DNA of 64,000 nucleotides, taken from assembly GCF_006345805.1 (NCBI RefSeq), contig NC_042997.1:182652001-182716000 (forward strand). Direction: 5' to 3'. The translations under genes and the position numbers were made by a program. The DNA comes from Octopus sinensis (lineage: Eukaryota). A model generated the notes under the pieces. The model was not told where the DNA came from and searched no databases. It worked only from the letters and a program-made list of their open reading frames with translations. This document shows positions 659-32,124 of this stretch, piece by piece. Numbering within the stretch: the first letter of the stretch is position 1; each line of letters begins with the position of its first letter.

Positions 659-3600
659 GTAAGTATTCCAGAAAATAACTGGACATTTTGAATATTTAAC
701 ATGCACAAAACACCACTGAGAAAATTGTTTGTAATTCTATTTTTGTTTAATTTATATATATATACTGTTTGGTAAAAGTTTTCTTTATAACCATGTGATT
801 CCAGATTTTCATTCTACTGCAATGCATGTTGGGTAAGGATCATCTATCATAGCTTCAGGCTGACCACTCTCTTACCAGTGAAATATAGTAGATCAAAACT
901 GCAGTCCACGTGTGTGTTTGTATATAGCAGTGTAAAATGCATATTTAAATCCATGGTAAGAGAGGTTACTCTCAGAAGGGACATAAATCTGATCAAATTT
1001 ATACTATTACATAAACATAGATATAATTAATAGCAGTCTACACCAAATAAAATAATGTTTCCATGTCATTTTGCCATCATTAACTGCTGCCTTCTTGATC
1101 TATGAGTCTTGAGGACCAAGTACTGCAGGAAACTTTTTTATGAATTAACTGGGATATCATTATTAATGCAGGAGCAGAAGAAGGAACTTTAAAAAAAAAA
1201 AAACATAAAAAATTGAGAGTTAAAGTGAAAATAGCAAAATGATTAATACTTAGAAATTTCATAGACTATTCATGAAGCAGTAGTATTAATTATGTGTCAG
1301 AATGTGTGTTGAATGTATGAATGACATTATTCTAAAATAACCAAATTAAGTTTGTAAAAATATATAACCAGCTGGAATGATAAAAGATGTATATGAATTT
1401 TTATATAGAGATTAGAATATAAGGCAACCTGAGTCTTATAAACACAAGATTAGAGTCTGGATTATTGGCAGAAAGTGATTCAGGTGCTGCATTGCTGTTT
1501 AAAATGAACTGCAAACATCTCTGTTACAAGCATGTTTCCTTGATTTATTAGTATTTTCTAAGAAAACAATGTTTTTCATATAAAATAATACCAGTTATCA
1601 TTGCCTTCCATGCTGGCATGTGTTGGACTTACTCCAACTCACGATGGTCTTTTTTTTTTTTTGTTGGAAGTCACTGTTTTCATAGATTGGTGCTAATACA
1701 TGTCATTTGACTTGGCTTCTACAGTTGGATGCTCTTCCTATTGCCAACCTCTTTACTGAGTATGTTGGTGCATTTTCTTGTAGCACTAACACAGGAGCAG
1801 TTGAATAGTCTTTGGCACAAGCTGCATAATATTATATATTATTGGCTAATAACTCATTTTATACAGTGATATTTTTAACAAAATTTAAATAACCTTATAT
1901 TTCAAATTTTTAGAGAAGTTATGAGGCAAAAATTATTTAATAGACTTACATAAGAGCATTTTAAATTGTATACAAAATACTAAGATATAACTAAATAAAA
2001 TAAGTTATAGCTTTATGAAACCAGTCAAAATTATGATTATTTGTGAATTTAATCAAAAGCATATAGGGGCACATCTTACTTAGAAGTATAGTAACAAAAC
2101 TTTTTGTATGTGTGTGTGTGTTAATACCAGCTGGTGAATTCTCATAATGATCTAAATATATCAATCAAATTTTAAATTAATTTGCTGATGAAGAAGACTA
2201 TGAATGTCAAGCAAAAGCATCATTTATAAAATATTTTCAAGAAAGGGCCTGCTAAAATTGAGCCCTAAATATACTTTTTGAGTCCTGATTATACTTTCCA
2301 ACACAGCATTTTACCATTTATTGTGTTCATTTATCATCTTCTCTATGAGGGTTGACATTCTGAGATTAAATTTCACCATTTCTGTCCATGCATGTCTTCC
2401 TTGATCTTCCTCTTCCACAGTTTCCTTCTACTTGGAATTTTTCTAGCTCTGTACCCATTTAGCATCAATACCAATGTCTTCAACTATCAAGCATTCTACA
2501 TCTGATGCCATTTTTGCCTATTTTTCTCTCAGCTCATTTACTTGATTCATTCAATTATTTTAACAAACCATTTTTGTAATTAGTCTTCTAACAGACAGAG
2601 CCAAGCATCTACAATATCCAGCCAATCAGATGCCTCAATTGAAGGTCCTGCAGAAGTAGTTCGAGAAAAATCTGCTAGTATGATAGAACCGCCAGTTGTT
2701 CCACCTACAACTCCTGAAATGTAAGTAAAATACAATATACACTGATTCATTAGTATAACTATGTTAATGCTATAGTCATACAATGGGGTTTTAGAGTCAA
2801 ACTCTTTTTTTATTTATTTAACTTTTCATCTCAGAAAACCTATGTGTATGTACATATATTTCGTAACCAGTGGACAAAGAGGTACTTGCCTAAAATAATG
2901 TACTAATTAATTATTATACATTCAGTGTACATATACTTTTGTCAGTGTCAAATTTTGCTTTGCCCAACATAGAATTTTGGCATATGCTTGACTATTAAAA
3001 ATTAGAAGGAAGTTACCCCATTGCAAAATTTCAGTTATCCAAGTGAAAAACTGATTTTACAACTTAGAATATTCAGCAATACACACCTTCACTTTTATAT
3101 ATGAAGATTACTTTTGTTATTCAAGCCTTCATAGAAATCAATTGTCTTATAGGGAACTGAAGCGGTCATCAGCCCCTGCTGAAGTTAGTGAACAGACGAA
3201 AAAAAATGATAAATCCGTATCTCCAAAATCGGAAATCCTTAAAGATGCTGACTCAGACTTTATAGAATTGAAACCATTAGATGATGTGGATGTTTCTGAT
3301 CAATTGATCAGAAAAAGACAAGTAAGTATTGCATTCTCTATTTCTACACTAGAATAAGAACTTGATACACTCACCACTCTTTAAAATGAAATTTCTCCTA
3401 ATCATCCTTCTTCTCCAATTTAGATATCTATAGCCTATATAGACATAGATATCTAAATTGTAATGGATGATAAATGGAAAAAAAAAATAATTTGAATTCG
3501 TAAGTTTCTTGCTCTTATTTCTCTGATCCATCTGATGAAAAATAGAGCACTGGAAAACTGAGAAAATTGCAGGATGTTAAAAGCATCAGTTAGTGTTCAT

Positions 3601-5209
3601 GTCTGGGACACATACATTGAAATTTATATATGCTACTAAATGGTAAGTGTTGTGTAAACAGTACAATGTGCCTGTCAGAGGAAATAGTATGCTCACAAAC
3701 AAAATGAGATTTGTAGAGACTTGCTATGTTACAAATAGTCCAACTTTAACACTGTGGAAAGGAATCCGGAGCAGAGGTAGACCCAAGACATGGGATGAGG
3801 TGGTCAAGCATGACCTTTGTACATTGGGCCTCACAGAGGCTATGATGAAAGACCAAGACCTCTGGAGATATGCTGTGACTTCGAAGACCCAACAAATGAA
3901 GTGAGTTCATGGCTTGCAGGATGGCCTGCCATGCTGCCCTTGGATCATAGAGTGACCTGCTGTGCTTGAAGAGACCTATTGAGTCAAGTGCGTCAATACC
4001 AACATCAACCCATGCTAGCATAGAAAACGAATGTTAAACGATGATGATGATGATGAATAGCAACTGTGCCTCAGTTGCATTCAAATCATACACACATTAG
4101 ATATCTAGTATCTTTCCTTTCTTTTGTATCTACACAGATACTCAAAGAGAAAATATCAAATTCAAAATGTTTCTTCATTCCTATATAGATTGACACTATT
4201 TAATAGATAGGTATTTAACTCTTATTTATTACTTGATTTCAGGCATTCTTATATTTCTCAATAACTACTGACTCATCTAATTTTCCGTATTTGTCATGTT
4301 TCTATCTTTTAGACAGAAGTGGGACCAGAAATAAGAGGTGGATCAGTCGATGCTCTTCTTGTGCATGCTACAGTTGCAAGCAAAAGTGGTAAGTCACTTT
4401 AAACTTTTTACTTCCTAATTTCATCTATTATTATGAACTTACACATTCAAAAATATTAGTCGTATTACTTGAGACATGGATTATTTTTCTCTATTCTTCA
4501 TTCCAATAAACCTACCATCTACCTTTGGTTAAATTTATACTCTTGAAGATTATTTTATTATTGTTTTATATTTATCACAATTTTACTTAATTATAGCCAT
4601 TTTTACTTTTCATAGAAAATTTATTCAGTGATGAAATATTTTGGTTTCATGGATTTCAATTGCTCTATATATTACCAAGGCAGTTTCAATTATGTTTTTG
4701 TAATTGATTTCATTTCTGTTTAACCATTATATCATTTATTATCATTACTGTGGGCACTCTGAGAATTGCATCCTGTTAAAAAAGATTTTCTTGGCCATTC
4801 TGCAAAATGTTGAGAATTCACCTATACATGTGTGTAGAAAGGTGGATGCACGGATAGAAAGAAGGAAATGAAATAGCCTAATTCTATTGCTTCTAAATGA
4901 AATTTTTTAAATACTTAAAGAATAATTTCTCTTTTCCACAAACTCAACTTATTTTGTAGAGTAAAATTTCTGAACATTTTATTTAGTTTATTAAAATTCT
5001 ATAACTTGTTTACATGTGACTGTAATTTATTTCAGATAAAAGAACAAATTTTCTCTATCCAGCCTTTCTTATTATGAAATATATAATCAAATTTAATATG
5101 CTCATTTCTTTAGTTATCATTTGACAAAAATCCATTTAGTGGATATAGTTTTACCACCATTTTCACACAATTTTGCTTTCTGATCAATTTTAAATCTCCT
5201 TGTTTTACA

Positions 5210-5254
<45 letters not shown>

Positions 5255-8200
5255 GTTAAACGGTGATGATATATATATATAAGCAATTTCATTGTGTTAA
5301 TCATTATAACTTTTAACACATATATACTACTGTATTCATTTTTATTATTATTTCATAAAAATACAATATTCATTTGCATCAAACACTTTCATTGGACATC
5401 TACAATCTAGTCGCAGTGAAATACTTTGATAAAGTAAATACAGCAATATAATATACATACACATCTTTATTTTTCATTAAAATTTTCTTACTCATAACTT
5501 TTATTTAATTTTCATCACTTTTGTTTCTAAAAAAATTTTTATAGGCACAGGTATGGTCAATGTCCAAGACTGGAATCAGTAAAATTTTATGTGTATGTAT
5601 ATATATTGAATGTGTGTGTGTATTGTTTAATGTACACAGTTGAAAAATACAAGCCACTAATAGTGTTTCATGGATTAGTAGCTCATATCTTTACACTATG
5701 TATATTAAATTATATTTATCTCACACTGGATGGAGTAGTTTTTTTTTAACTTTAACAGGACAATAAACTATATATATATATGTATATATATATAGACAAA
5801 CATAACTGTGTGGTAAAGAAGTTTGTATCCCAACTACATGGTTTGAGTTCAGACCCAATGTGTAGCATGTATATTCTACTATAGTACAGGCCAACCAAAG
5901 CTCTCAAGGCCTTGGTCACTGGAAACTAGAAGATCCCTATTATGTGTGCGTTTGTATGTATACTGTTCTTTCTGAGATAACATTTAAATATTTAGCCTAG
6001 TCTTGAGAAAGAAATCAGCCACAGGCATGACTGTGTGGTAAGAAGTTTGTTGCCCAACCACATGGTTCCGGGTTCATTCCCACTGCATGGCACCTTGGGC
6101 AACTGTCTTTTAATATAGCTTCAGGATGACCAAAGCCTTGTGAGTGGATTTGGTAGATGGAAACTGAAAGAAGCCCATTTGATGTGTATCTCACTACCAT
6201 TGACAATTAGTGTTGCTTTCTTTATGCCCTTGTAACTTAACAGTTCATCAAAAAGAAGCTGAAAGAATAAATATGAGGCTTAAAAATAAATACTGGGGTT
6301 GATTTGTTTGACTAAAGCCCTTCAAAGTGGTATCTCAGCATGTCAATAACTGAAACAAGTAAGATAAAATAACTCTTAGATATATTTATTCAGGTTAACT
6401 GTTGTTGCTTCACTCCAAATTAGCCCTGCTTGAATATTTGTATGGCACATACAACTAGATGTGATCTTCATATCTATTGTCCCAGATAAACCATGCCTAG
6501 GAGACTATGCAGTGGTATACTTTATAGTTTGAAGCAACATAGATGTCAATAAACTTATTTAATCTTATTTAAACTTATTTAATGTGCTCGATAACATACT
6601 GAGGTATATTTCTATATATCTATATTGACATGTAGGGACATCAATTCAGAAGTACCTTAATCTGATTCATACTTAGCCAAGGTACATGGCTCAGTGGTTA
6701 GTGTGTCAGGCTCACAATCATGAGGTTATGAGTTTGATTCCTGAACCGGGCTGTGTGTTGTGTTCTTGAGCAAGACACTTTATTTCATGTTGCTCCTGTT
6801 CACTCATCTGTAGACATGTGTTGCAACATCATTGGTGCTAAGCTGTATCGACCTTTGCCTTTCCCTTGGGTAACATCAGTTTTGTGGAGTGGGGAGGCTG
6901 GTATGCATGGGTGACTGCTGGTCTTCCATAAACAACCTTGCCTGGACTTGTGCCTCAGAGGGGACCTTCTTATGTCCAATCCCATGATTATTCAAAACCA
7001 AAGGGGGTCTTACTCTTTACCCTTATTTAGCCAAATACAATCAATAATAATTAATTGAAATTTAATTGATTCAATTTGGATCTTTTTATGATGATTTTGA
7101 TTGAATTCCTCAGTTTTCCTGACTTTAAAAAAAAAAAGAAAACAAATTGGTAAATTCCATGTTTTCAGCACATTCACATTTCATATCATTTTCAAAGTAA
7201 TATCTGATGTCTTTATGTTATTTTAGAAGTTGTATTTTAATAATATTTCCCTCCCAACCATTACTAATGATATGTCTATGCATGAAGCAATATCAGGTAA
7301 TATTATTATTTCATGCTTGCATTATTTACAAGTTTATTTTCCTTGTCTTGATTTTATTTTTAATTGTGAAAATTAACTTGCTGAAAGAGGTGCATACCAC
7401 TACTATTTACATTTTATACTCATTACATATAATTGAATAATTCATGTTACAAAATTGCATGGTAATTTAATAGTACCAGTTACACTATTCATGCACTCAT
7501 GTTATTGTATGTACATATTCAATGGAATTACGTAATATATACTCATTTTGGATTGGACTGGAACTTGGAGGGTCTAATCCATAGTGAGTATTTCAAATTT
7601 ATTTCATGCAAGTGTATTCACTTTAATGAGAACTATTACTAGATTTTAATTTCAATTTTGACTGTTTAGTAAATATAGATATTGTTACAAAAAATCTACT
7701 CATATTAGTAAAATGTAGAATAATTAATGAATTTTAATAACCTGCTACTTGTTACAAGTAACTAACAAACTCAATAAAGTTAATGTAACTAAATACTTGT
7801 TATACAGAGTCCAAAATAAGCTTCTTCTGATCCAGTTCTATATTTAAGAGATGAGGAATTGTGTACATTATTTATATTCGACGGATAACAACAAACAAGA
7901 TGAGGGCAAATATCTGTCGAATGTAAATAAAGCGTCTTCTGATTCTCTTGTTAAAACTCTATTCATGTTAACTAAGTAGTCTCTAATCATACCTGCAATT
8001 CAGGCTCTATTTGTAAGATGTATAGCACTGATTTTTCAGCTGTAAAATCAGTTTCAAAGACAAAAACGCTTTGTAGCTTCAGAAAGATTCGAAGCAGTTT
8101 ATAAGCAGAAAACCTTTTTCTAATTTTTTTTCCCTCTATTTTAAGGAAGATAAAATATTATATACCAATAAGGAACCACAGGAAAGGATTTTTTTTTTAC

Positions 8201-8541
8201 TTTAATAAAACAAAAGCTGAAGTGTGCATGAAATTAGTAAACCTTTTTTTTTAATATATAAGAATCAATGTTCTGGATTAAATTCAAAACTTATTTCCAA
8301 CTGTTTATTTCATTTTAAATTACTATTTTGAACCATTTCATTCTATGCTTTAAAAAAATTAAGTTAAAGCTCCATCATCATTTCTTCATACTTAAGGCTC
8401 ACAAGAAGACTTGGTTAATGAAGAAGGTAAGGTTTTGCCTACTCTATCAATATATGACTACAGACTAACCCTAGCCCTAGTCAACAAAATAAGAGAAGCC
8501 TTCATCTGCATTTTTATCATTGTTTGCAATATAGGTGTGTG

Positions 8542-8576
<35 letters not shown>

Positions 8577-11134
8577 ACACATGCATAACTAACTCTTTTT
8601 TTTTTTACTGTTTCTCACACTCATCATTTATTTTGTTCTTTTTTATTTAACTTTAAGTTACATGTTATTGCCTTTCTGCTTATAACCATATCTTTATAAT
8701 ACTAATGCTTGTTTATTTAACTTTTTATTTTAACCCTGCTAAATTTCACTTTGCTGCTAAACCAATTTTTATTATTGCAAGTGTTTAATAATTCTAAATA
8801 ATGCTTTTAGTAATCACATGGCCAATATGTACTCTATTATTTTCTCTAAAATCAAATTTATTAGGAACTAAAAAGCATCTTGGAAGAATTTATATACGAT
8901 AACTTATAAAACCTTAGTAGTATCTAAAAGTACTTTGTGATTACCACATTTAGTAATATTATAGAAGATATCTCCTGAATAGTTAAATGGTGTAGCATGT
9001 AAAAGAATGAAATAAGGACTAAGCAGTTTTGAATGTAAAGTTCAGAGTTCTCCTTTTATAAAACTCTGAAGAAAAAAATTTTCTTAGCTTTTATAAATTA
9101 AAACATATCAATTTAGTGCATTATCTAAAATTCTGGCTTCAGTAATATCTATTAAAGCCAACCAGTGTTGTTGAAACAATATTCCTTTTCCCTTTAGCGG
9201 TGGGTAAATTAGGATAGAATAGTAAATATTTATGCATTAACATTTTCTATATCTACAGAAAAACACTTTCTTTGGAAAAATGTAGACACACATAATTAAT
9301 ACCATTTTCATTCTTATATAATAATGGAATGACTGGACAATTAGTGAACTTCATTCCCTGATAATGTTTTATTGAACTTCAATGATTTCCATGAAATAGT
9401 TATAATTTTAGATGTTTAGGTTTTTGTAATAAAATTATTTGCTCTGTTTTGTATCACATTCAAAGAGCAACAATCTTGTCTTGTACATCTCTGCTAATAC
9501 ATTATTAACCCATTTTGTTAACATATTTCTGTTTAAATACACTACCATTGTTTAATCTAATTTTGAAGTAATGCAGAATTTATTAAAATAACTTTGTCTT
9601 TATTAAACTGGTGTTTGGAATATAAATTAACATGAAATTTTGATAGGAGGTTTGAATTTAGACCACTTTAAAACAAAATTTATATCATAGAAACAAGGGT
9701 GGTTTTGAGTGGATTAGTAGCAACAGGGTGAAGGGGAGAACCCAATAGCTTTCTTAACAATAAACACTCATTCACCTGGTTTGACACCACTACCTAGCCT
9801 GTCCTTGCATATCTTTAGCAGAAGCTACTCTGTCGTAAGTATTCAAACTAAGTCTCTAGTTTGAAGATTAACCAATATCTTGATGTGTTGCTTTCTATTG
9901 CTGCAATTCATGAGTTGTGGTTTCTTCCAAACCAGTCTTAGAGGCTCTAAAATTTAATTAAGGCATCTAAAAGTAAAAAAATATTTTTTAAACTTTTACA
10001 AAATAAATCTTATTTAGACTTTAAATTTACTTCATGTTAAATTAGCTATTTCATTAAATGTAATAGGTAAAATTTCATCATATAACTTTTTCTTTTTATT
10101 ATTTTTCTTTCTTTCTCTTGATCCTTGTTTTCTGCAAGTTGTAAATTTAAAGAGCTTTGAGTCAATTATTTAAAACTATATTAGTAAAATTGCCTCCCCT
10201 AAATAATTGAGTGACAAGTTTGAAGTTGTACTACTTAACATATTGAAGCTCACATACAAGCCATTTAGAGATGGCTACAAATATATGCTCTATGTTATGA
10301 GAAAATAGCATTTGATTTTTATTCATGAGTTTTCATTCGATTTCAGTTACTCTGAATATCATCTTTGCTTTCTCCAAAATTAAAAACAGAATGTTATTCT
10401 TAAGTGAATTCTGAAACTGAAACTTATTCTTTATAATTGGCTAAAATGTTATTTTGAAAGTTGGTAGTGTTACAAACTATATATATATATAGGTTCTTAG
10501 TTATTGTTTTTCCCATGTTAATTTTGTTTCTAGATTACAAAGTTTTTTTTCTAATGTAAAATAACTCCAGCAAGCAAATATGACTATAGTTAATTTTATT
10601 AACTCACTATTCTCTTAAGATTGTAGTCTACACATAGGCTTTGTATAGTCCATATGGAATTCAGCCCTTTTTAACTAGGTTCTAGATGCATGAATATAAA
10701 ATTAGTTTTTTATTTTTTGTTTTCTAATTTATTCTTTATCCGTTTTATTTTTAATTTTACTACTAACTTAATGTTCTTGAGCACTTTTGTTAAATGTTAT
10801 TTTCCCATCCACCCTTATTTCTGCTTTTATCAATTTAACATGCCTTAATACACTTAACACATCAGTGAATGCTTCTCTTAGTTTTGTTTGAATAACTTTT
10901 TTTTTTAACCATAAAGGTATTTGCTTGTAATGGAATCACCTTCATCCATTTGTATTTGTTGTGTTTTGCATGTTTGACCATGTTTTTGTCTCACTTCACC
11001 CTTCATTATTTGGCACTGTAGCAGTAACTTGAATGTTTGCTAATTCACTTGTAGATTTCACAAAAATGAACACATTCCATTTTATAGAAATTTATTGCCA
11101 ATGATATATATATATATAGATATGTGTGTGTATG

Positions 11135-11179
<45 letters not shown>

Positions 11180-14100
11180 ATATATATATATGTGTGTGTA
11201 TAAGTGGGTGTATATAAGTACGTATATATGTATATATATATAGCTTATTTGGCAATATTTCTTAGTGGTTTATAACCCTAGGCCACAGTGGTCATGTCCT
11301 TGATGATAGCTTCTTCACTGCTTAGTTCAAGAGCTTTTTTTAAAATTTTTTTTTTTATTTTAAAGCTACCAAAAAACTTGTGATGATAAGAAGTCTCTTA
11401 TTCACTCCTTTTAGCTTTTGAAATTTAATATAAACAGAATAATGTTGATAATGATTATTTTTGACAAATTAACATCCTAAAAATATTGATTCTTACCTCA
11501 AACAAAATTTATCTAATCTGTTTCTTAAACAATTTGTAGAAGTAGCCTTGGTATACTGTTGTATTCAGTGACTAACTAGGAACTTAAATCTAAATTTCAA
11601 ACAGCAGAACCATTAGATTTTTATTAACAATCTTATAAAATACATCACCAACCTTACTTTTTAATTTCTCTTCAAAAAATCATTTCAGAGTGCTACCTTT
11701 AAATGTATACAACTTATTATTCTAATTGCATTCTAAATTGCCAAATAATAAGAGCTGAAATCATCTACTTACAAAATAACACTCACCTTGGGGGCCTATT
11801 TATTTGTGGCTTTCATTTGTTACTGCCCACTCTATTTCTCTCTCTCTTTTTTTTTTTTTACATTAGAAAGGTTTTTTTCTTCGTCTAATCATTGTCTTGT
11901 TTTATTTTATCATTGTAAATTATTCAAAATTAATATTTTTCTCTTCAATGCTGGTGCCTTTGCTTTCCTGTCTATATATTGTGTTACTCTTCCTGGAGAC
12001 TGCTGGTATTAGCCAAATGGTTGTAGTATTAATTTTACTTTCTTGTGTGTTTTATATGTATATAAAAAGTTCTTCAATTATTATCTATTTATTGACTAAG
12101 GTTGGTGTCAGTTAAAAATAATTCTGTTGACATTGCAGCTTAGAAAGTTTATCTTCACTTTTTTTCTCCTTTTTTGTGTTGTTTGTTTTGGTGTTGGTGT
12201 ATTTTTATTTTTTTATTTTTGATTGTTTTTATTTTGCTTTTGTAAACTCAAATGCAAATGTTTCATAAAATTAAAATAAATATTAATCTAAATGTAAAGT
12301 ATTTTGAATCTCAACTTGATGTTAACTAAATTGCAAATTGATATAATCTCAGAACAGTGAATATTCATGTAAACTTAAAGTAGTGTGAGAAAGAGAAATT
12401 ATGAATTAAAGAAATATAACATAAGAACTTATTTTCTTATTTGAGAGTTATATAAAAATTTTTAAAAACCTTCAAAAATTTGAATGAAAAACAGTTTAAA
12501 GTATTGAGACCCAACATTCTAATCAATATGCTTGTTACTGCATTATTGGAGATCTGAATAATAATCACAGGTATCTTACTTTTCCCCCTACTGTAATTTA
12601 TATTCCTCACTTATAACTCTCTCTTCTTTTATATAATTAATTCACTTATTCAAACACTCAATGTTCCAGTTTTTGTCTTTGCAGCATTCAAAATATGACT
12701 CTGTTCATCTGAATCAGCTTGCAAAGTATTTATCTTAGATATGTCAATAAATCAGGAATAGACTTATGAATTTACACTTACTAATGAATTCAAATTTAAA
12801 CAGAACATTTAAACCAGAAATTTGTAAAAACCATTTGTGTATGAAAAATATGTGTAGAAAGAGTAATTGAATAGGTTAACAGATATATTAAAGCAGTCTA
12901 TAAAAGTTGAAAAATATATATTCTGACATGTTTTAATAGATATAAATATATTCATAAGATCTACATTAGTAAACTGAATAAGGATTTAAATATTTTTTTC
13001 TATGTAATATTGTTTTTATGTCTATATGTATGTACATATGTTAGTGTGCATGTACATTTTAAGAAAACTTGATTTTTATCTTCAGGATACTTATTCTACA
13101 ACCATTAAAAGTAATATTTTATTGTTTTTCTCTGACCAAGCCTAAACTTTGAACTCACTATCAACCTTTCCCTTGTAAAAGTTTAATAAGCCTATGTATG
13201 TGTATTGTGTGTGTGTGTATATATATATACGTAAAAAGCACCCACTACACTCACGGAGTGGTTGGCGTTAGGAAGGGCATCCAGCCGTAGAAACACTGCC
13301 AGATTTGACTGGGCCTGATGAAGCCTTCTGGCTTCACAGACCCCAGTAGAACCGTCCAACCCATGCTAGCATGGAAAACGGACGCTAAACGACGATGATG
13401 ATATATATATATTGATAAAAATGGTAAGACAACAAAAGAATGAAAGAGACCTCGATATTATGTAAATAGAGAATTTATTTTTAAATGTAATATGTGACAA
13501 TTATTCGGTAGGCGGCGTGGATTTCCATTTCAGCATCCGAAGCTCGGAGTTTTATCATGGCTACCGAATAATTGTCACGTATTACATTTACAGATATATA
13601 TGTGTGTGTATCTGTGTATCTGTGTTTATATAGTTAGGAGAATAGTTTATAAGACAATGTGTCTAATATGCACTTAAATACTTTTCATGTTTTTTAAAGA
13701 ATGTATTTTTTTATATTTTAATTTTCCTTTTCTTTAAAAGATTTAATTTCAGAAGAAAAGCTTATGAACTTAAGATTTATTCATGCAAACATTTATTTTA
13801 TAATTCATTATATAGAAATGGATTTATTTATTTATTTATTTATTTATTTTACTTTTTAGAGATATTTTGCTGTTATGATTTATTGTACGGTGCTCTACTA
13901 AATGTTATTGTTATATAGTAAGATGTTCTAAATATTGTAGTTTGATAGTACAGTAGTTGTGACTGGTCCATTGTGGTGTCAGCAAGTTCAATGAGCTTAT
14001 GAATTTTCTTGATTAAAATTCATTGACATTAAAGCCAAATATACATTGAGTTATTTAATATTTTTTACCAAATGCATCTGTTGCCAACACTGAATTTGTG

Positions 14101-15810
14101 ATATAAATAATTAACTAAAGTTAGCATATTGATGCGATCAGTTCAGAAAGAGAAAAAAAAAAAATTGCAAATTTTGTTGTTTATGAGATAATATATTACG
14201 TATGGTTGGTTTGATAAAATAAAAATAAATATATTCTTAGATTATTGAAGTAATCTTGGTGTATTTTACTAGTGAATGAGCACTTAATTATAATTTCTTT
14301 CGTAAACTTAAGTATGCAAAGTTAACTAAAATAAACGACTGTAATTAGCAACTTGTGGGAGAATTAGTCTTTTGAAACCCTTTCTAACTTCAGCTATCAA
14401 CTTGAAATTACCAAAATATTAGGAATAAATTATATCCTTCTTTTCGTTTGTTAAGTTTTTTTTGTTTTGTTTTTGTTTATTTCATACATTAGTTTCAAAT
14501 TTACATTTTAATCCTTTTTTTTTTGTTTTACAGATTTTATGTATCAAGAAGCATTTTTGACTACATATAGAACATTTATTACTCCTAAAGATTTGATTGA
14601 AAAATTACTCTACCGTTTCCACAAATTTCAACATGTTTCTGATACAAGCAAAAAACGGTTGGCACGTAATGCCTTTTCCTTATTGATACGTGTCCTTGAT
14701 GAATTGAGGTACTTGCCAAATTTTTATATAAATATATTTTTATATATTTTGTTATATGATGCTCGCATATTATATATTTGCATATTATGTGTATTTCATA
14801 TCTATGTATGTATACACACACACACACACATCTCAGAAATAAAGAGACACCATCATTTTTTAAATACCTACTTCTAGAAACAAATTGTCACTTGATGCAT
14901 TTAAATACTTAATCTAGTATTTAGTAGTTTTTATGCAGTTTTTACTGATTTTAATCTGTTGGGCATGCTTCACAAGTAAAACAGTATAACAAGAGGTGTC
15001 TATTTAATTTTGAAATATATATGTGTGTGTTTCTACCACTGAATAATTATTTTGACATTTTGCTGAAACATGTTTACAAAGTCTGATCAAAAAGTAACAG
15101 GACTGGTGTTATAAAATGTAAACCATAACATATATCAATTTGGTAGATAATCTTCTTCGAAGTAGTCCCCTTCTGGAGCCACACACTTTAATCCAGTGTT
15201 GTTTCTATTGATAGAAGCATCCCTTTTGGGGGATAGGGAGCAGCTGCTTTATCACATTGTCTTGGATTTCCTTGACATCTTGAAATCTTGTTGGGGGTCT
15301 TCCACTTCAAAGACTGAGCCTTGATTTCAGGATCATGACCATAGACCCATGATTTATCACCTGTTATGACTGTTTTCAAAAGGTTGTCATCTTCCACAAG
15401 ACAATCCTGCACAACTGAAACCTGATCTTTTTTTTTGAAATGACCACACTCTACACACTTAACTTCCAAGCACTGCTATAAACAATGGGAGTGAGAAAGA
15501 ACATTATAACTTAGTATGCATACACAACAGAGTTCAAGTTCAAGCTGTGTTAAGGAGCTTCAGTCTGTGTACTTTGGCTCTGTTACCATAACAACAGTCT
15601 TGATACTTTTTGATCAGACCTCATATGTCCTATAATGCTTTGAATGTCGTATCTGTTTTCTACTTACTTTTTTGTTATTTGGCTCATACTCCACACTCCA
15701 GCTTATCCCCAATTTAGTGTCCTGTGTCATATCATACTGGATATCAGAGTGGATTATGGAGCCCACTACTAAGTTCAGCCTTGGTTGCATGTCACACTTT
15801 ACTGTGCCTC

Positions 15811-15850
<40 letters not shown>

Positions 15851-18800
15851 TGTACTACATGACAGTGAAACATGGTCGTAACTGCTGAGTACATACAGAA
15901 GCTTGAAAGAAATTAAGCTAGTATGCTCCGCTGAATGTATTATATCAGTGTGCATATATGATAGAGTGTAAGCGCCCTGAGAGAAAAGTTGGACATAAGA
16001 AGCATCAGATGTGGTGTGCAAGAGAGACAACTTTGCTGGTATGGTCATGTGTTGCATATGGATGAGGACAGCTGTGTAAAGAAGTGTCACACCCTAACAG
16101 TTGAGGGAACCTGTGGAAGAGGTAGACATGGGATGAGGTGGTGAAGCACACCCTTCAAATGTTGGGCCTCACAGAGGCAATGACAAGCAACTGTGACCTT
16201 TGGAGATAAGCTGTGCTTGAGAAAACCTAGCAAGCCAAGTGAGATCGTAGCCATAGCTGATGCCAGTGTCGCATAACCTGCCTGTTTAAAAGTACCTTTG
16301 AATCATCAGGCAATATGCTATGCTTGAGAAGACCTGTTGAGTCAAGTGATGTCATAGTCATGGCCAATGCCAGTGCTACCTGACTGCAAAATAAAAAGCA
16401 CCCACTACACTCTCGGAGTGGTTGGCATTAGGAAGGGCATCCAGCTGTAGAAAACATCCAACCCATGCCACCATGGAAAAAGGATGTTAAAAGGATGATG
16501 ATATATATGCATGCATTCATGTATGTATGTATGTAAATCAGCCATGATATGCAATCAAATATGACTTTATAGCAGAAATCTATGTAAAATTATGTTGTGC
16601 TCATTTCTCATAATTCATGTGTTTCTAATACAATGAAGATGACACCAATGGAATCGATAATATTATTTTTTGCAACTTCTTTAACCTTTCTGAACAACTT
16701 TGTCCTTAGTCTCCTTATAGCCTAAAATTCTGGATATTTTCTTTTTTTATTGTGTTAATATTTTTCAAGTTACCACAGGTAGATATTGTTATACTTCAAA
16801 TTTCAATATCTCGAAACCTTTAGCAGATTACATAATGATTACCAATTTTAGATTTCAAAATGTGATTACTGAACTTTTGATCCATTAGGTTGTTGTTCTT
16901 ATTGCGATAATTTTCACCAAATTTTCATAAGACATGTCTTTGAATTTAAAATCTAACTGGATTGAATCTGTTTTTCTCTGTTTCGAGCACGGTCTTTCTT
17001 ACTCTTAACTTTCTTAGACTGACTTCTAATTGCACTAATTTAATACTGAAAATTATGCAAATTTGTATATCTTTTGAGTTGTTAACAACTTAAATTTCTC
17101 TTACTTTTTTTTCTATTTTCTATTTAGCTTTCAAAAATTACCTAAGAACTAAAAATTCTTTCATATTAAATATGATACACAGCTGAGTACAAAATAATTT
17201 ATTTTTGGTAGGGGAAAATCATGAATATATATTAATTTTAAAATGATAATTTAATAATCATAACATATTGTCTTTTAACCTTATTTCTGTTATTACTAGC
17301 CTATCTTTTATACCTGAAATTTCTCCATCTTTTTATCCCAATACTATCCCAAACATTTTTTGAAACCTATCAATTCTCTAAAATAGCATAAAAACAAAAC
17401 AAAAGAAACGAAAAGAAAATTAGGCACTGACATGCAAGTTGTAATCTTTTTTTAAAAAAAAAATTAATTTTTCTTGTAAGTATTGTGGAACAATAGAAAA
17501 TACTCAGTAGACCAATTTCAAAACATAGTTTTATCTGCTTTCTTTATGTTGCTAATGGCTTTGGGAAAGTGATGAATATTCTAATTTGTTAAGACTCCTC
17601 AGGTCTTAAATCTTGTAAGTCAATCTTCATGATGAAAAATAAGCAAAATCATATACCATATCATCTAAAATAAAATCAGCTTTACAATTCAAACTTTTTT
17701 GCGCCAGATTTTTGTAAAGGTTAGGCTGGTTATGAATTGCATGAAAAGGGTGCTTTACACCTACTAGTTGTGTTGTTTAACAACTATTTTCTAATGGTTA
17801 TTTTTATGCTTTGGTCATAAATGTTATTCCTTGAGACTTTAAAATTTCTAAATGAATTTTTTTTAAATCACAGCTTCTAATTTAATACTAATATGAATTT
17901 CTAAAACTAAACATCTTTAGAAGAAACTTTAAGATAACCTATAATATATTAGTGATTAAATAACTAATAGCTTTAAAATAATGTGTTGAGTTATTTATTG
18001 ACTGAATAAGTCCCTTATATGAAGCAGTAAACTTTATTTTAAACTAATGAATTATTTACTAAAATAGTTTTCGCTACACTAATAACTAAAATGTTGTATA
18101 CATTTAATAATTTATTTCTATTTTTAAACCTAAAGCATCTGGATCATCTCTCTAGCTGCTAACCATTCAGTGAGTATTAAGCTCATATAAAAGTTTTTTC
18201 GTGTCAGCTGCTACTTTTCCCTTATATTTTAACAGCGTTTGGTGCAGACTTCGAGAAAAATGTGCATCTACTGTGAAAAAGAATCCTGCAGGTTTTCAAA
18301 ATAAGTGTGTATTTCTTAAAATTGTTTTGTGCATAAATTAGGTCTTTAAACATTCATAGTTTGATATAATTTGACTTCCATAAATATATAATAAATCTTT
18401 AATACTTAGTATTGATAATTTTTTTTAAAGCTTTCCAAACATTCCCCTCCCATCTAATATTTTAAGATTCTCAGATTAAGTAATAACCTTTTTCTCAGAA
18501 TACTACACTATATTGGATTGCTGTAATCATAAATAAGAAAATGCAAACTAATTAATTTTGCTGTTAATACAGTTTTACAGGTTGGCAGATAGTTTTATGC
18601 ATAAACTAGATTTTTAAATACTCAATTTCATTAATAACATAATATTAAACAAATAAAAAAGCAAAAAAGGGGAAAAAATAATATTTTATTAATTCATTTG
18701 AGGTATCACCAGAATACTGCATTGATTAGAAAAATAAAATTGTTTAAAAGATAAAGAAAATGAAAACTACACAGTCCCCTCCAGCAAACTAACCTGATCA

Positions 18801-19996: not shown

Positions 19997-22900
19997 TTTT
20001 GTGCAGGGATTTACTTTCAAACAGTTTTAAAGTGATCAATATCAGCTTTTAAAACATTGTCTGAAAAGAAAATATATCCATTGTGCCATGTTTTAATTTG
20101 TTTCTTTATAGTTCTTCTTGCAGTAGCACATCCTCAGAAATAGATGATGAAATCAGCCAAAAAATGATGGATTTAGTATTTGAATTGCTCTGTCAGGGAG
20201 AATTGACTCTTGCTAAGCTTCTTCGGCGGAAAATTGTCGAGAAACTTGAAGCAAGAAAACACATGGAAATCACTGCTAAGACTAATAATCTACCCTCACA
20301 CAGTTTAACACTTCAGTAAGATTCTTCTTTGTTTTTTTGTTCCTATGTGGCTTCTATATAACAGAGAGCTTTGTGTTGAAATAGCTTAAATGTTGTTTGA
20401 TAAGTGTTTGAATAAATTATAAATCAGCTGTTACTTATGTTGATCAGTTTCTCTATATATATATTTTACCAAATTTGAATAAGTTTTTGCTGATCCATCT
20501 TATTTTTAAGTTTGCTTACTTTGTAACTGACACTATTTTTTATGCAATTATAACATATCATTAACACATAATACTGGTGAAACTTTTGTATTATTTTCAA
20601 TGGGGAATCAAGGTTACAACTTACATATAAAAATGTGGAGACGAGCTGTCGTCTCTTGGTGGGCCAAGATTCTGTGGTGTTTTAATAGAGATGACTGCAG
20701 AAAGAGCTTTGCCAGAGTGCAGCTTATGATCCCTAATGTACTAAGTCAATGTACTTAAAAATAATTACCTTCTGTACTTATATATCTGCAACAAAAAAAT
20801 ACAGAGGAGCTTTAATTAGAGATACACTACACAATATTTATTGGAATACTTTGGAATTAAAAAAAAAATAATAATTTTGGTTTTTATTTTTTTTTTATGA
20901 AAGGTATACCTACAATTTTATCACAACTGAAAAATGTAAACAATTATAAACAAATGTTTTTATCTCTCCATCTACAGAGAAATTAGGGTTGGTCTGACCA
21001 CTTTTGTTTTTGTTTAGAGACTCATTAAATAAAATGTTCCAACTTCCTCTGTCCCTAGAGAGATTGGTAACTTATAGCTTTTTATACTGAATGCAAACCA
21101 GGACTCAGCTAAACTGACCAATCATTGGTGCATTAATTGATTAGTGATTCTATTGATGTTTCCTTGGCCAAAGGAGTTGGTTACTTGTTCTATGGTGAAT
21201 CTTTAAATAGAAATTAGGGCAATACCAATTTTTGTGCATATAGGGAGCTTAAATATGTTAACTATGATAAATTGTCTAGAAGGCAGTCATGGTGAGATGA
21301 CAGCAAAATTAGTTAGCAAAAGGCTGCCATATACACACACACACATAACTTTTTATTTATCTAATCACACACACACATTTTTCCATATCTCTAAGCACTC
21401 ACATATATGAAAGGCCATGTAAGTTCAAATATGCACCCCCACGTATAAACACAGAGTTCAAATCTATCTCTATATACACCCGATCAGTCTGAAAACTCTG
21501 AGATACTTATCAATTCAAGTTTAAATAAAATTAAAAGATTTTATCGTTGATTTAGGTTTTAGGTGGTGATGTGTATTCTTACTTATTTATTCCATAAAAG
21601 ACTTTTAACCTTATTTATGAGTTATAACCTGTCTGTCTCTTTCAGTTTGGAGTATAAAAAAGGTAAATTTTCTCAATGTCACCCTAGATTTGAATAGCAA
21701 CCTATATTTTCTTTTCCACAAACCTAATGTAAATCTTAACTACATAGATAAAAATTCTAACCACCCAAAATTTATTAGAAATTTTGTAAAGTATTTCTCT
21801 TAGAATGTCCAAATTATCTTCTAACAAAGAAATTCCTAATAATAATACCGAGTATTATAATGAGGCTCTGTTGAAAAGTGGTCATAATAAAATAAAATTT
21901 ATTACTCCTACTGATAGAACTACTCTAAATATAGCATATATTCTAGATCTAAACATATGAAATGTATCAATACACCACAGAACCTCTAATTCAACATTCC
22001 AAACATAAAGATATTGCAAATAAGTAGGGAAAAAATTATAATGGCAGTATAAATACATCAAATATAATTACCTAGGATAAAAGTGTAACTATCAGCAAAT
22101 CTAAGAATAAAATTAAAAACCCTGATATTAAAATAAATGAAATTAGCAAAACTAAATCTCTTGAGAATGAATGCACCCTGAAGCATAGAGTTAAAAACTA
22201 ATAACATAAGACATACAAAAATTTTATTATAAGGCTGAATTCCAACAGCCACAACATACATAATATGAATGTTAAAAATTCTAACTTGAAATGTAGAGTA
22301 AGAAATAACTTAATCCATTCTGACATATCCCAAGTTGCATACTCTAGCAACACATCATCAAATAGAGCCACAAAGGGCAATCACAATATTCCTCCTCTGA
22401 AAATAATTGCCATACATGAAAAAGGCAGAAAAAGTAAAACTAAAAAAGGGAGTGTAACTTGATTTAATGCATCCTGTGCAAAAAAAAAAATTAAGACAAA
22501 TATACCTAGTTTTCTTTGGTATATTAGGTAGGATTTTTTTCTCCAAACCACAAATACCACTGTACTTTTAATAAATACACAATTAAATTCTCTTATCTAT
22601 AACACCTGCTCTTGCTGATATTATCAAATACTCTAATGCATATAAAATGAATTAATATAAGGACAACACACAAAAAAATAACAAACTTTCAAACTTACCC
22701 TACTAATGTAGTTGGTGAGATTCATAATCTAATGGGTGAGATTCATAATGCTGGAGGCGAAAATACAGAATCCAAAATATGCCTCCACAACGCTAGTACT
22801 AACATCCCTTAACATGTCATCAAAATGATGGTAATGTAATAAATGAATATAATATAAAAGATGATAATTCTGTACACCTAGTGAACAAAATAAGGAAAGA

Positions 22901-23889: not shown

Positions 23890-26800
23890 CTTCTTATATA
23901 AAATAGACCTGTGTGTATGTATTCACTTTTCACGCTACAATAGCTGCACAAATTGCTTCCATACTTGGGATACATGAATAATTTGACCTCGGATACATAA
24001 TAGGGTCGTCAGTTTATTTTTTTATTAAAAATAAATAGTATTGTTTTATATATATGATTCACTTCTTTAAAAAAGATTTTCAATGTCAACTTTTGGTATT
24101 GACAGAGCAATGGCAAAATTTTCCGTTTTCATTTGCAAAATCTCTCACTCACTATTTTAATGTTTTAATTCACTATTTCCAAACTAGTACGATAAATTAC
24201 TGAAAGAAATATTTATTAAGTTCACAAATTTAAATATTCGGTACAACAGCTTTATTTATATGATTTTTTCCATTTCATGTTTATTTCATTCATTGTTTGC
24301 AATGTTCTCTCTCCCCTTCTCTCTCTCTCTCTCTCTCACACACACAAGTCAGTCACACACACACACACACACGTGTTTTTGTAAGTACATTTATATGTGT
24401 GTGCGTTTGTGAGAGAGAGAAAGAGAGTGAGTCAGTCAAGGAGTGTGTTGTCATATATACGTACATAAATAAATACATATGCATACATCTTTTTTGTATG
24501 TATGTGTGCATATGTGTAAGAGAGACACAGAGAAAATGATGTGTACGTGTGTGTGTGTGTGTAGATAAATAAGAAAATGGGGGAAATGTATGTATTTACA
24601 GCTACGTTTCATTAACTAATTTTGCTGCCCACACTTACTCTTACTGCCCTCTAAATTATTTATTATGGTTAACTTTGAAATGTCTTTGAACTATGACAGC
24701 TTAGACCTTCCTTTCTTCTTAGATATGGAGAGTACATTACTCCTTTTTTTTTCTTCTTTATTTCACTGAATTTTCTCTGTCAGCTCACACCTATGTTAGT
24801 ACGAAGTACTGAATTGAACTATGAAATTCTTCTAAAGATCTGACATTTCAATCTTACTATATGGTCATTTACATAACAATTATCACAAACATACAAACAG
24901 TATTTGCTGGTTAAACACACGTAAGATTAAGTGATTCATGATGCTCTAATAAAAGTGCTTACACCAACTCTCCAGGTTTGTTGTTCTCAGATATACACTC
25001 TGTAAATTATTCAAATGTATATAATACCAAACAAAAATTGAAGTACAAATAGCATTTAACACTTGATTGAAATTTGGATGTACGAGGATTTACATGGACT
25101 TCTAAATGTTGGTTAACTGCTGTGCTGTCTCAATTGAGGTAGCACAACTTGATTACATATATGTATGTATATTTGTATCTATGTACACACATATACATAT
25201 AAATCTCATAAATATATAAAATTTCTCTTGCAAGGCTTCCTGATTTACTTCACTTTAAGTCACAAGATATAGCAGAACAAATGACTTTACTTGATGCTGG
25301 ATTATTTCAGAAAATTGAGGTTAGTATCAGTTTCACTAAGATCACTAGCATTTTGTTGATATGTCTGTATTTATTAGAACTGACTTTAGCAATGTTTATT
25401 TGATGACATAATAAAAATAAATCTTCTGATAATAATTTTAGATCCCCGAGGTGTTGTTATGGGCAAAGGAACAATCAGAAGAACTAAGCCCAAACTTGAC
25501 CTTGTTTACAGAACATTTTAATAAAATGTCCTATTGGTAAGTTATTTGAAGCATGTGATTATTTCATTTACCTTATATTGAGAAAAATAACTGTTTCTGT
25601 GCTGGCATTAGTTATGCTACATTGTACTGATGAAGCATCAAACTCTCATCTGAAGTAGTGTTGAATCAGAATTTATAACCAGTGCCAATTTAGAAACAAA
25701 CAATGTGGCCTAATCCTAGCATGACAAATAATACTGTTGCAAGAACCAGTGTAGAATCTGACATTAACGTCTGCCAATTGATATAATATAAGAACCAGTG
25801 CTGATGTGATCAAGAAGATCAATGATCAACAGCATTCAAGCTGTGGCAATTTCATCTGTTTGTGTATAAAGAACTACATTGTCCAATGTGTTCCACCTTT
25901 TGTAAAACACTAAAGTGTTATTTTAGAGAGATTTGGTTGTCATTTACAACAGCTTGAGAAACTGCTAAGAGGCTCTCATATTGGTTTATGGTGTGGCATT
26001 ATAGCAATTACTGCTGTGACATCTGACACTGGTGTGTAATCTCATCTTAGCCCAGATAGAGCAGACTGCTTGCATGTAAGTAGCTTGTCGAATGAATAGG
26101 TATGATCCACAGGTCTAAATGAGGAGCATATTGCACATTCTGAGAATCAGTGGTTAATTGTATGTAGTGTCGCGTTGAAACCTGGGCATACTGTGCTCTT
26201 TTCACTATTCAGTTTGTTTCTGTATGTCTCTAGATTCTAGTGTTATCCTGATGGAAAGAGGTAGAGAGAACTTGATCTGGATGTGACACTTGTTGTTACT
26301 TTGTATTTAATATTGGTTTTATGCAATACAAATGTTTAGGGCTAATGATGCTGCTGCTATTTTTGTGTATGTGTGTATGTATTTTATATTTGTCCAGACA
26401 GGGGAGATAGTGTTCTTAGAATACTGTTGTTGTATTGAACTACAGTGTTGCAGAGACATTTAATTGGCCATGTTATGGGATAGGTTTTAATGCTTTGAGA
26501 GTTAGTTTGGTACCCAGTATTTTGTCTTTTTTCTTGGTAGCAAGAGATGGGGTCAAAAGCCTTGCTGATGTAAATAGTAAATTAAATGATACATAGGTTT
26601 TTGTCAAAGCTTGTGTATATTTTGTAGATGGTTTGTGAACGGTGTGATAGTTGAGTAATAGTGTTCCTAATAGTGGTGAGAGAAATGTATGAGTTAATTA
26701 TATCAAAGCTGGGTCATTACAAAATTTTAAAATTTATACCAAGTCTTTTAGTTAGAATGGCTTTATTGAAATTACATATAAACAAGACTCAATGTAATAA

Positions 26801-29800
26801 AAGAGGTAGTGATTTATAACTCTCCATCAACTTCAGAATGCTGATAAGTTTATAGTTAACAGAGCCTAAGATGTTGCTCTTTTGAAGGCTATGATAGACT
26901 GTCATATTTCTAAAAGCTAGGTAGTTAAAGAATTTAGTCAGGATAGAAACTAATTCAAGATATCTTTTTACCTCTGAGATATACAATGATAAATCCAACA
27001 TTTTGATATTCTCTAGGTGCCGAACAAAAATACTTATTCAGGAAGAGCCTAAAGACAGAGAAAAATATTTAATGAAATTTATAAAAATTATGCGAGTGAG
27101 TATTATTAATTATGTCTTTTTTTAATGTAAGATTTATGTAAGTGTCAGTACTGAAAAACCATTTTGGAAAACCAAATTGTCACTAGTATGAGTTTAGTTT
27201 CCACTTGGATCAGTTTAGCTGAATATACTTTTCCCTCTTATAATATATTAAAAAACGCTGTGTAACTATGTAATTCAGATACACAAACTTTCTGTATATT
27301 TTTATCATACATTATTTTCATATAATCATTTATATATATTAACATTTTCCTGTAATTTCCCATGTTGTCTTTGATTACAAGGGCATCATAATATCCCTTC
27401 TCACTCTAGTTGTTTTTTGCACAAACTTCAACTTTACTCATTTGTCATTGAAGAAATTATCTAGATTTTATGTGCAACTAAGTTAGATCACATTTTATTT
27501 GAATTATAAGCTATAATTCATTATTCTTTTAAGATTTAATACTTAATACATCTACACTTGTTATGCTCTCCATTGGAATTCTTTAAAAATGTCCACTTTT
27601 TTATTTCAACAGCATCTGCGAAAAATGAGTAATTTTAACTCATATTTGGCTATTTTGTCTGCCCTGGATTCTGCCCCTATTAGAAGGCTGGAATGGCAGA
27701 AACAGAATATGGAAGTAAGTTGTTTTTCTTGTTGCATGAATTAAGAGACTAAACTACAGGTTCAGTATTATCATCATCATCATTGGTCTTATATTGGTTT
27801 GTTAACAAATTGGCAATCATTAGAGCATCAGATAAAATACCTTGTGGTATTTATTTCAGTTCAAATCCCATCAAGGTGAACTTCACCTTTCATCCATTCA
27901 ATGTCGATATAAACAAAGTACCAATGTAGAGCAGGAGACTGGTGGAATCATTAGTGTGTCTAATAGAATATCTTGTGGTGCAGGGGGCTCTTTGCTTTCT
28001 GAGTTCAAATTCTGTTGTAGCTTACAAGGGTTGTAGACTTAATCTATCAGCTACGTCAGAATCCTTAATGAAGTCCACCACTGCAAACATTGGATTTGAA
28101 GATACCTTATTCTCTGCTTCCCAACCTCAGAAGCCCTGTAAAGAGTCATGAGCAGCACCCATTCTTCTGATTAAGTGATAAAAACAGTCCTTTTTCATCG
28201 CAGGCATAATGTGCCTAGATCTGGCATTTAAAAAAAACTGTTTTGGCTTCAGATGAAAAGGACACAGCCCCCTGATCTTCACATGCAGGTCCTGCAAGTT
28301 TGTTGATAGAGTTTATATTCAGCTTGAACATGTCACTGGCACAGGTGGCAGAGGAGGCTGGAAACAGCTATGATCGGTTGGTGCTTTTTATGTGCCGCCG
28401 GCACAGAAGCCAGGCAAGGCGGTGCTGGCATCGGCCACATTCAGATGGTGTTTTTTACATGCCTCTGGCATGGGTATCACATTTGATTTTTATTTTGATG
28501 TTGATGTACTTGGTTTTATAAGATTTGGATTTTGGAATCTGAGCATAAAGACGAGTAGTATGGGATAAATACGTCGTAATTAGAATTTTTGTTAGGATGT
28601 GTAAAGAGAGAAAGAACCCTCAATATGTTGTATATACAGTTTATTGATGGACCTTTATTTCATTGTTTTCTCAGGCGTTGAAAGAATTCTGTCAATTAAT
28701 AGACAGCTCTGCGTCATTCCGGGCCTATCGCCAGGCTCTATCAGAGACAGAACCCCCTTGTATTCCATACTTGTGAGTATACAGTTTCCAATGACACTAT
28801 TATTTACTATTGTTGTTTAATATTTGCTTCCACACTTATAATGATTTTGTGATTATATAGAGTAAGAGTTCAGCCTATAAGTTTAGTACTTTTTTTTTTT
28901 TGATTCATAGAGCCATGTTATGTAAGTTTAGGATTTTCCATTCTTAACTGTTTTTCTTTCTTTTTATTTCTTGATCTAATTTTTTGTTTGTCTTATTCAA
29001 ATTTTTTGTTCTTTTGATTTTACTTCATATTTCTAATTATAGATTACTTATACTGTCTAAGTGGCATACATGTAAAAATTAGTTCCTTTTTTTTTTATGT
29101 CACTAATATTTCAATATTTAGAATCTACAATAAAAACAATTTGCTTATAGCATACAATGAAATTGTTAATTTATCTAATTTTATAATAATAAAAACAAAG
29201 ATATTAAATATTTTAGTTCTTAGCAAATCCTGACTAAAAGATTATATTTAACCCTCTCTTTAGTTAGGTTCTCATGTATGCATACATTCATAAACTTGAG
29301 CAAAATGCAGGTTTTGATTTTATCAATTTTCTTTTTACAGAGGATTAATTCTGCAAGATCTGACTTTCATTAATATTGGAAACCAAGACTTACTACAAGA
29401 CGGTAGCATAAATTTTGCTAAAAGATGGCAACAATTCAATATTCTTGAGATCATGCGCAGGTTCAGAAAATGGTAAGTAAATTCAGGTTATGGTTTCAAA
29501 AGAGTTTTATCAATAATCAGCTGAAATTCAAAGTTATCTCAGTGTGCTTTGATTCTGTTTGTTAGTGAAATAGATTTATATTTTAATATTTAAATTTTAA
29601 TTGAATTATTTCCATTTCAGATATTAAGTCTGAACTCCATTTTCTCTCTATCTGTAACAAATTTCAATTGCAAAGATTTTATATTCATTTGTAAATCAAC
29701 ATCTAAGACTTATTAACAATGGAAGTGTAAAGTAAGCTGAATGTAGGGAATAACTTAAGATTTTTGTGCATTAAATTTAAAGAAGAAACTTGTTAAAGTA

Positions 29801-31060: not shown

Positions 31061-31494
31061 AAAAAATAAGGGACAGCGGGGAAATTTTCTCCAGAGGAGC
31101 CACTACAGTAGACATAGCTCTGACTGCTGCTATGACAATTGCTGCTGCCACTGCTGCTGCTACTGTTGTTGTCCCCACCCTACTGCCTGCTGCCACCACT
31201 GCTGCTACTGCTGTAATCAGTCAAAATTCTGCCTAATGAGTAACAGGAACTGGAATATGGTTAATGTGAAATATAACAGGAATGAAAAAAGTTTAATAAC
31301 AATGATAATACTGATAAAAAACAACACAGGTGTGTTAAAAAAAAATATGTGTTCTATGAGTACTACCAGGTTTATGATGAACTCTACAGGAATATGATGA
31401 AAAAACAAATCCCTATACAACCTATAAGATTGCAGCTGACTCTATTAGTTGCAGATTTCTGAGGAGAAAAAATTCTCTAGTATAGTAGAGAAAT

Positions 31495-31497
31495 ATA

Positions 31498-31556
<59 letters not shown>

Positions 31557-31932: not shown

Positions 31933-31964
<32 letters not shown>

Positions 31965-31987
31965 TGTATTTATAATCACATATATAT

Positions 31988-32036
<49 letters not shown>

Positions 32037-32124
32037 TTATATACTTGTATATAATTTATAATATATGTATATAATTTATATTAATATAAAATTTTATGCA
32101 TACTTACGTACATATGCAGTATTC

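Follow-up and report, generated by a model that had tools for sequence, protein, structure and literature searches.

A 30-nt segment within a long intron of the gene for C3G (RAPGEF1) in Octopus sinensis is probably a real exon, since a deeply diverged ortholog has kept it in sequence, length and phase, together with the splice sites at both ends. The segment, here called mx2, lies in a stretch of 64,000 nt (the window; NCBI RefSeq assembly GCF_006345805.1, contig NC_042997.1, forward-strand positions 182,652,001 to 182,716,000), in the intron between the exons that we name E_d and E_e (Table 1). An initial annotation had described it as the middle one of three candidate microexons, with a 6-nt segment on each side (mx1 and mx3). 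We put at about even probability the reading that mx2 is one genuine, conserved cassette exon that alters the surface of the REM domain, the 6-nt pairs of AG and GT being products of chance and no three-exon array being present. According to this proposal, inclusion of mx2, which has phase 1 at both ends, would insert the decapeptide GSQEDLVNEE, with a net charge of -4, after ...HATVASKS and before DFMYQEAF, and its skipping would give the canonical short loop. [quoted passage not shown] We infer from the sequence that mx2 is used in mRNA, that this use is alternative and that it may have an effect on activity.

Conservation of mx2 in the orthologous intron

Genomic contigs were fetched behind those protein-database matches that had long contigs. 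The closest ortholog obtained in this way, L003 (from an invertebrate; ENA ERZ25069866, positions 1,335,125-1,355,328 of ctg4876_20x_l, a contig of 2.78 Mb), has E_d at 3206-3277 and E_e from 10028 onward, with an intron of 6.7 kb between them, and tblastn with the ten-residue mx2 peptide gave a match inside that intron. The segment found there (Table 1) is identical to mx2 at 23 of 30 bases and has the same length, the same phase, the same AAG acceptor and the same GTAAG donor, so that the conserved block takes the form AAG/...GAYTTGGTTAAT.AAGAAG/GTAAG (slashes mark exon borders). The peptides, GSHSDLVNQE in L003 and GSQEDLVNEE in the window, are both in frame with the flanking exons and keep a DLVN-E core.

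This match stands out from everything else that the two introns share. When they were compared with each other by blastn, only two matches of non-low complexity were obtained: the mx2 block, with 76% identity over 50 nt (E 1e-5), and a piece of a tRNA-like short interspersed element (SINE) that is not collinear. In an ungapped scan of all pairs of 38-mers from the two introns the mx2 block came first, with 31 of 38 positions identical, the maximum in the reverse-complement control being 28. Among 1,273 same-length pairs of in-frame AG...GT segments, the mx2 pair was the sole outlier (identity 0.767), and the highest identity in 58,161 control pairs of the same length, obtained with candidates of 24-36 nt and about 300 kb of unrelated sequence, was 0.667. 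At the scale of the locus, blastn of window positions 1-32,000 and about 20 kb of L003 gave as collinear blocks the exons E_d to E_m and mx2 only.

The distance between the two species gives these figures their weight. Amino acid identity between the window and L003 is 78-94% for exons E_g to E_l and 57.5% for the C-terminal E_m, and the nucleotide identity of the constitutive exons is 0.71 overall (range 0.60-0.75) and 0.42 at third positions, from which it follows that neutral sequence is saturated between them. The nucleotide identity of mx2 (0.77) is thus at or above that of the constitutive exons. It is highest in the 3' part, where 17 of the last 18 nt are identical, a value that the constitutive exons attain in no more than 2 of 629 windows, and the GACTTGGTTAATGAAGAAG block shows extreme nucleotide conservation. 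This suggests an additional constraint on the 3' half at the RNA level, as is typical of regulated exons. From these comparisons we conclude that mx2, as a predicted exon, is under purifying selection.

It is quite improbable that nothing is spliced in here and that the 50-nt block represents an element of the intron other than an exon, such as an enhancer or an RNA-binding site, or a chance match. Such an explanation can point to the single comparator species and to the many weak matches that AT-rich introns yield, but conservation ends exactly at the AG and at the GTAAG, and both species preserve the length and an open frame free of stop codons. Among the differences are three changes at third positions and the replacement of one whole codon, and no control pair is as identical. 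On the minus strand the frames are interrupted, and the flanks would not serve as splice sites. Neither an Rfam match nor a stable fold (z = +0.64) was found for the block; with a tRNA scan equally empty, its interpretation as a noncoding RNA was discarded.

Location in the REM domain and probable mode of splicing

The window contains on its + strand what is, by its predicted domains, the 3' half of the C3G/RAPGEF1 gene. The spliced model of eleven exons (E_c to E_m), placed by means of reading frame, splice sites and orthologs, matches in Pfam RasGEF_N (PF00618) at 43-51 bits and RasGEF (PF00617) at 183.6 bits (E 4e-54), in the domain order of C3G, i.e. the REM domain (RasGEF_N) followed by the Cdc25-homology domain (RasGEF) at the C-terminus. 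An upstream exon that ends at 658 encodes GTPPALPAKLGR (motif at 632-652), in which PPALPAK is, as read from the sequence, a predicted Crk-SH3-type PxxPxK motif, and two of the closest orthologous fragments, which are exon fragments only, carry the JGI name 'Rap guanine nucleotide exchange factor 1'.

Exon E_d ends in ...CAT GCT ACA GTT GCA AGC AAA AGT G, followed by GTAAGT, and E_e begins after ttttacag (acag/ATTTTATG), with G+AT giving Asp ahead of FMYQEAF. The form without mx2 aligns free of gaps to the REM domain of SOS1 and SOS2 (LIERLTYHMYA/DPNFVRTFLTTYRSF), with the point of insertion at chain positions 619/620 in the SOS1 entry 3ksy. Given this alignment, the intron falls within the loop that joins the first REM helix to the second (alpha1-alpha2). 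The initial annotation had assigned the gene to C3G, the intron to a phase-1 position between ...HATVASKS and DFMYQEAF and the candidates to a loop of the REM domain, of which the last two were borne out and the first is supported by the domains, the motif and the fragment names above. Both forms of the protein exceed the RasGEF_N cut-off, with 51.3 bits for the skipping form versus 43.3 bits for the form that contains mx2. The loop of the skipping form is of canonical length, as in SOS and in the C3G of other animals. A distant ortholog from JGI (P0003) carries at exactly this loop a low-complexity insert of about 40 residues, GSSQGSSTSTASRSATNPNPTNPTNPTNPSSSNNKTA, which indicates that the site tolerates long insertions.

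The REM domain of SOS1 and SOS2, an allosteric module beside the Cdc25 domain, has the same fold as that of the window gene. In C3G, too, the REM domain transmits an activating input, which comes from the NTD: in the mammalian protein, GEF activity rises on contact of the NTD with the REM domain (PMC7849780). SOS differs from the Rap1 activator C3G in being a GEF for Ras, regulated by Ras-GTP at the interface between REM and Cdc25 domains. We are aware of neither an insert nor an alternative exon in this loop of SOS. As the REM domain receives this contact, an acidic insert of ten residues in its first loop would offer a testable handle on the allosteric input.

No mx2-like exon was found in seven other lineages in which the whole orthologous intron was visible. 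The length of this intron is 1.3 kb in L004, about 0.1 kb in L005/6, 3.5 kb in L007, about 0.5 kb both in L009-11 and in L012, 3.4 kb in L014 and about 58 nt in L015; the contigs of L001, L002 and L013 did not reach across it and were left out. The REM fold therefore works without the insert. L003 is the nearest to the window in every exon, so that mx2 would mark the clade that contains L003 and the species of the window.

Four features make it probable that mx2 is a cassette rather than a constitutive exon: its symmetry, its placement, in the window and in L003 alike, with the region's two longest introns on either side, the nucleotide conservation of its 3' half and its absence elsewhere. 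The alternative that mx2 is real but constitutive, a fixed ten-residue extension of the alpha1-alpha2 loop in both species, with the 6-nt pairs again due to chance, appears less likely to us, though of appreciable probability. It draws on the same conservation evidence as the cassette reading, and also on the strong donor GTAAGG, on the AAG acceptor, which is found in the constitutive exon E_g too, and on the lack of any conserved known regulatory motif. Against it stand the length and phases of mx2 (a multiple of three, phase 1-1) between the longest introns of both species, a conservation of its 3' half that exceeds that of the catalytic-domain exons, the canonical loop length that skipping already gives and the seven lineages that do without the exon. 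In E_g, the acceptor in question occupies 25232-25234 (cttgcaag/G).

The cassette interpretation also has to be weighed against several other observations. The comparator species that bears mx2 is a single one (L003), a query of the protein database with the exon-junction peptide returned genomic exon fragments only (at most 81% identical to E_e) and no transcript of a close relative, and no further copies of mx2 came up when JGI metagenome contigs were scanned twice for its pattern. UGC, which forms part of the enhancer just upstream of Srrm4-type exons, is missing from the 50 nt that precede the mx2 acceptor in both the window and L003 (the nearest TGC in the window is at -51, and the 100 nt ahead of the acceptor in L003 and of that of mx1 have none), and no Rbfox motif (GCATG) is shared between the two, so that the sequence gives no indication of a neural programme. 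The AAG acceptor of E_g means that the weak acceptor of mx2 is no proof of regulation. Finally, 6-nt exons fall below what similarity can detect at this divergence, and their absence from L003 leaves room for lineage-specific use of mx1 and mx3.

A screen for UGC, YCAY and GCATG gave no conserved signal. In the window there are four YCAY motifs (CCAT, TCAT, TCAT, TCAT) at 8372-8386, in the 25 nt ahead of the mx2 acceptor, an arrangement that resembles a Nova-type cluster and is absent in L003.

Irimia et al. 2014 and Torres-Mendez et al. 2019 reportedly described Srrm4/eMIC-dependent neural microexons of bilaterians, with lengths of 3-27 nt and located in surface loops of signalling proteins. 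The likeness of mx2 to these lies in its very short length, symmetry and frame, in the charged insert that it would add to a surface loop, in its long flanking introns and in its high nucleotide conservation. The differences are that UGC is missing within 50 nt and that 30 nt is just above the 27-nt limit of some definitions. Our literature search found no paper linking C3G/RAPGEF1 with microexons. If used, mx2 would be a conserved microexon from invertebrates beyond the well-studied sets of insects and vertebrates.

Alternative exons of the same gene family are known from mammals. Cassette exons 12-14 of RAPGEF1 are combined in various ways in brain, heart, muscle and testis, the brain-specific isoform of C3G is a protein of 175 kDa, and a study in the mouse reports that the 3' part of the transcript, from exon 19 to exon 27, is free of variants (PMC7606606; bioRxiv 10.1101/2024.04.07.588436). 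Those exons and mx2 have in common that they are in-frame additions to C3G. However, exons 12-14 encode long serine-rich segments and are not microexons, and they belong to the disordered Crk-binding/SH3b region beside the autoinhibitory region, whereas mx2, of 30 nt and with a sequence unrelated to theirs, is placed within the folded REM domain. Known vertebrate isoforms of C3G vary only the disordered linker; the use of mx2 would represent a previously undescribed, deeply conserved way to alter the folded REM domain.

The 6-nt segments and the background of AG...GT pairs

The three segments do lie where the initial annotation had placed them, between AG and GT, with lengths divisible by three and with the frame kept on skipping, and inclusion of all of them would indeed give the loop KS-GT-GSQEDLVNEE-AV-DFMYQEAF. 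Its other descriptions needed correction. A pyrimidine-rich acceptor, ascribed to each segment, is present in mx3 (83% pyrimidines) and is only moderate in mx1 (56%, with an A7 run), and the acceptor of mx2 is AAG. A final G had been considered a need of phase 1; the phase does not demand it, and the G merely keeps the next codon as Asp. The rough estimate that one such pattern might arise by chance in the intron proved about ten times too low. Applying the features that had been used to single out the segments (AG, length a multiple of three and at most 51 nt, no stop when read in phase 1, G as last base and a donor beginning with GTA), 13 segments are counted in the intron, four of which share the mx2 donor. 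Control DNA (the reverse complement, two other introns and 13 kb downstream, both strands) contains 13.6 per 10.1 kb, and the intron simulated 200 times with a Markov-1 model gave 11.5 +/- 4.1. If the final G and the GTA are dropped, the intron holds 233-260 in-frame AG...GT segments, 26 of them of 6 nt. The count of the pattern is that of chance and the pattern alone carries no information. In-frame AG...GT patterns arise at the chance rate in long, AT-rich introns such as this, and it was only conservation across species that separated a candidate from the decoys.

To check its proposal, the initial annotation had suggested aligning the orthologous intron in related species; in L003 the AG/GT pair of mx2 is conserved, and mx1 and mx3 have neither a counterpart nor any flanking similarity. 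The L003 intron has 22 in-frame AG...GT segments of 6 nt, versus 26 in the window. Upstream of mx2 in L003 there is no AG/GNACNG/GT and no 6-nt segment that encodes GT, and downstream the sole AG/CNGTNG/GT (encoding AV), at 5742-5747, overlaps the donor region of mx2 and has a poor GTTGTG donor. In the window, the A7 run breaks the acceptor tract of mx1, whose donor is GTATGG, and mx3, with its good pyrimidine tract, has a GTAAAT donor that lacks G at +5. Both look like chance AG/GT pairs, indistinguishable from some two dozen others.

The combinatorial array itself, in which two or three of the segments would be joined in up to eight REM-loop isoforms, is accordingly not borne out, and we consider it improbable. 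It has in its favour that the AG and GT of all three segments could serve for splicing and that their lengths keep the frame, that the tract of mx3 is good, that mx2 is probably real and that mammalian RAPGEF1 combines three cassette exons, although in another region (bioRxiv 10.1101/2024.04.07.588436). This has to be set against the lack of conservation of either 6-nt segment in L003, the abundance of equivalent 6-nt segments in both introns, a total that equals chance under the original description, and the defects of the mx1 tract and the mx3 donor. More speculative still, and very improbable in our estimation, is an extended version in which mx2 would be an old core to which the two 6-nt microexons were added in the lineage of the window, up to eight loop variants then grading in neurons the activation of Rap1 exchange through NTD and REM domain. 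The single conserved cassette exon is the reading that we favour.

A repeat check made within the 64-kb window placed mx1, mx2 and mx3 all outside repeats. An origin of the candidates from transposons found no support in this check, which was limited to those 64 kb.

Gene model and other elements of the window

The coordinates of exons, intron and candidate segments are given in Table 1.

Table 1. Exons of the C3G gene, the intron under study and the candidate segments. Coordinates refer to the window, except in the last line, which refers to L003; slashes mark exon borders.
Feature	Coordinates	Strand	Description
E_c	3153-3321	+	serine/proline-rich linker
E_d	4313-4388	+	REM helix 1: TEVGPEIRGGSVDALLVHATVASKS + first base of next codon; donor GTAAGT at 4389
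Phase-1 intron	4389-14533	+	10,145 nt; position common to many animals
mx1	5545-5550	+	6 nt: tatag/GCACAG/gtatgg
mx2	8397-8426	+	30 nt: cttaag/GCTCACAAGAAGACTTGGTTAATGAAGAAG/gtaagg; AAG acceptor 8394-8396, donor GTAAGG 8427-8432; (G)SQEDLVNEE
mx3	9198-9203	+	6 nt: ctttag/CGGTGG/gtaaat
E_e	14534-14708	+	REM helix 2 onward: DFMYQEAFLTTYRTF...RVLDEL; PF00618 RasGEF_N
E_f	20124-20315	+	C3G exon
E_g	25235-25319	+	C3G exon, start of Cdc25-homology domain
E_h	25442-25536	+	C3G exon
E_i	27017-27095	+	C3G exon
E_j	27613-27714	+	C3G exon
E_k	28675-28772	+	C3G exon
E_l	29341-29472	+	C3G exon
E_m	30913-31060	+	last C3G exon, stop included
mx2 counterpart in L003	5707-5736		30 nt: tataAG/GGTCTCATAGTGACTTGGTTAATCAAGAAG/GTAAGC

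Exons E_f to E_m encode the end of the REM domain and the Cdc25-homology domain, and all of them are collinear with L003. E_d is conserved across L003-L015 and corresponds to a blastn block (4304-4399) collinear with L003. The exon at 3153-3321 and another at about 2595-2721 encode a serine/proline-rich linker that is poorly conserved even in comparison with L003. Open reading frame (ORF) fragments of other animals end just before DF[MIL]YQEAF, which indicates that the position of the intron is widely shared. In the distant C3G-like sequences P0029, P0030 and P0032, the junction of E_d and E_e is continuous (…TIKNDFLYQ) and the intron lies instead within DFLYQ/EAFLTTY; intron positions in this part of the REM domain thus vary among lineages.

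Several repeats were observed in the window. The SINE fragment mentioned above is tRNA-like (TGGCTCAGTGGTTAG...GGTT.GA..CC, tail GTGTTGTGTYCTTGAGCAAGACACTTTA) and occupies 6687-6782 in the window and 9679-9770 in L003, with 72% identity; given that the pieces are not collinear, they represent a related repeat family and not orthologous sequence. A repeat that translates as ...KSTHYT(H/L)GVVG(V/I)RKGI... is present in at least three copies on the + strand (13153-13287, 16358-16447 and 51544-51669). One such copy falls in the intron studied here, and a self-blast of 13229-13408 detected up to three further copies. Long microsatellites of TA/TG type, seen in translation as runs of IYIYIY or CVCVCV, are frequent (8529-8587, 11100-11240, 31450-32500), and one of them begins about 100 nt downstream of mx2. 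Downstream of C3G, the remnant of a mariner-type DNA transposon is found on the + strand at 49892-50194 and 50366-50746. Its second ORF matches Transposase_1 in Pfam (PF01359, E 1.7e-8) and the first has weak helix-turn-helix matches below the cut-offs; the two lie in different frames, so that the copy looks broken.

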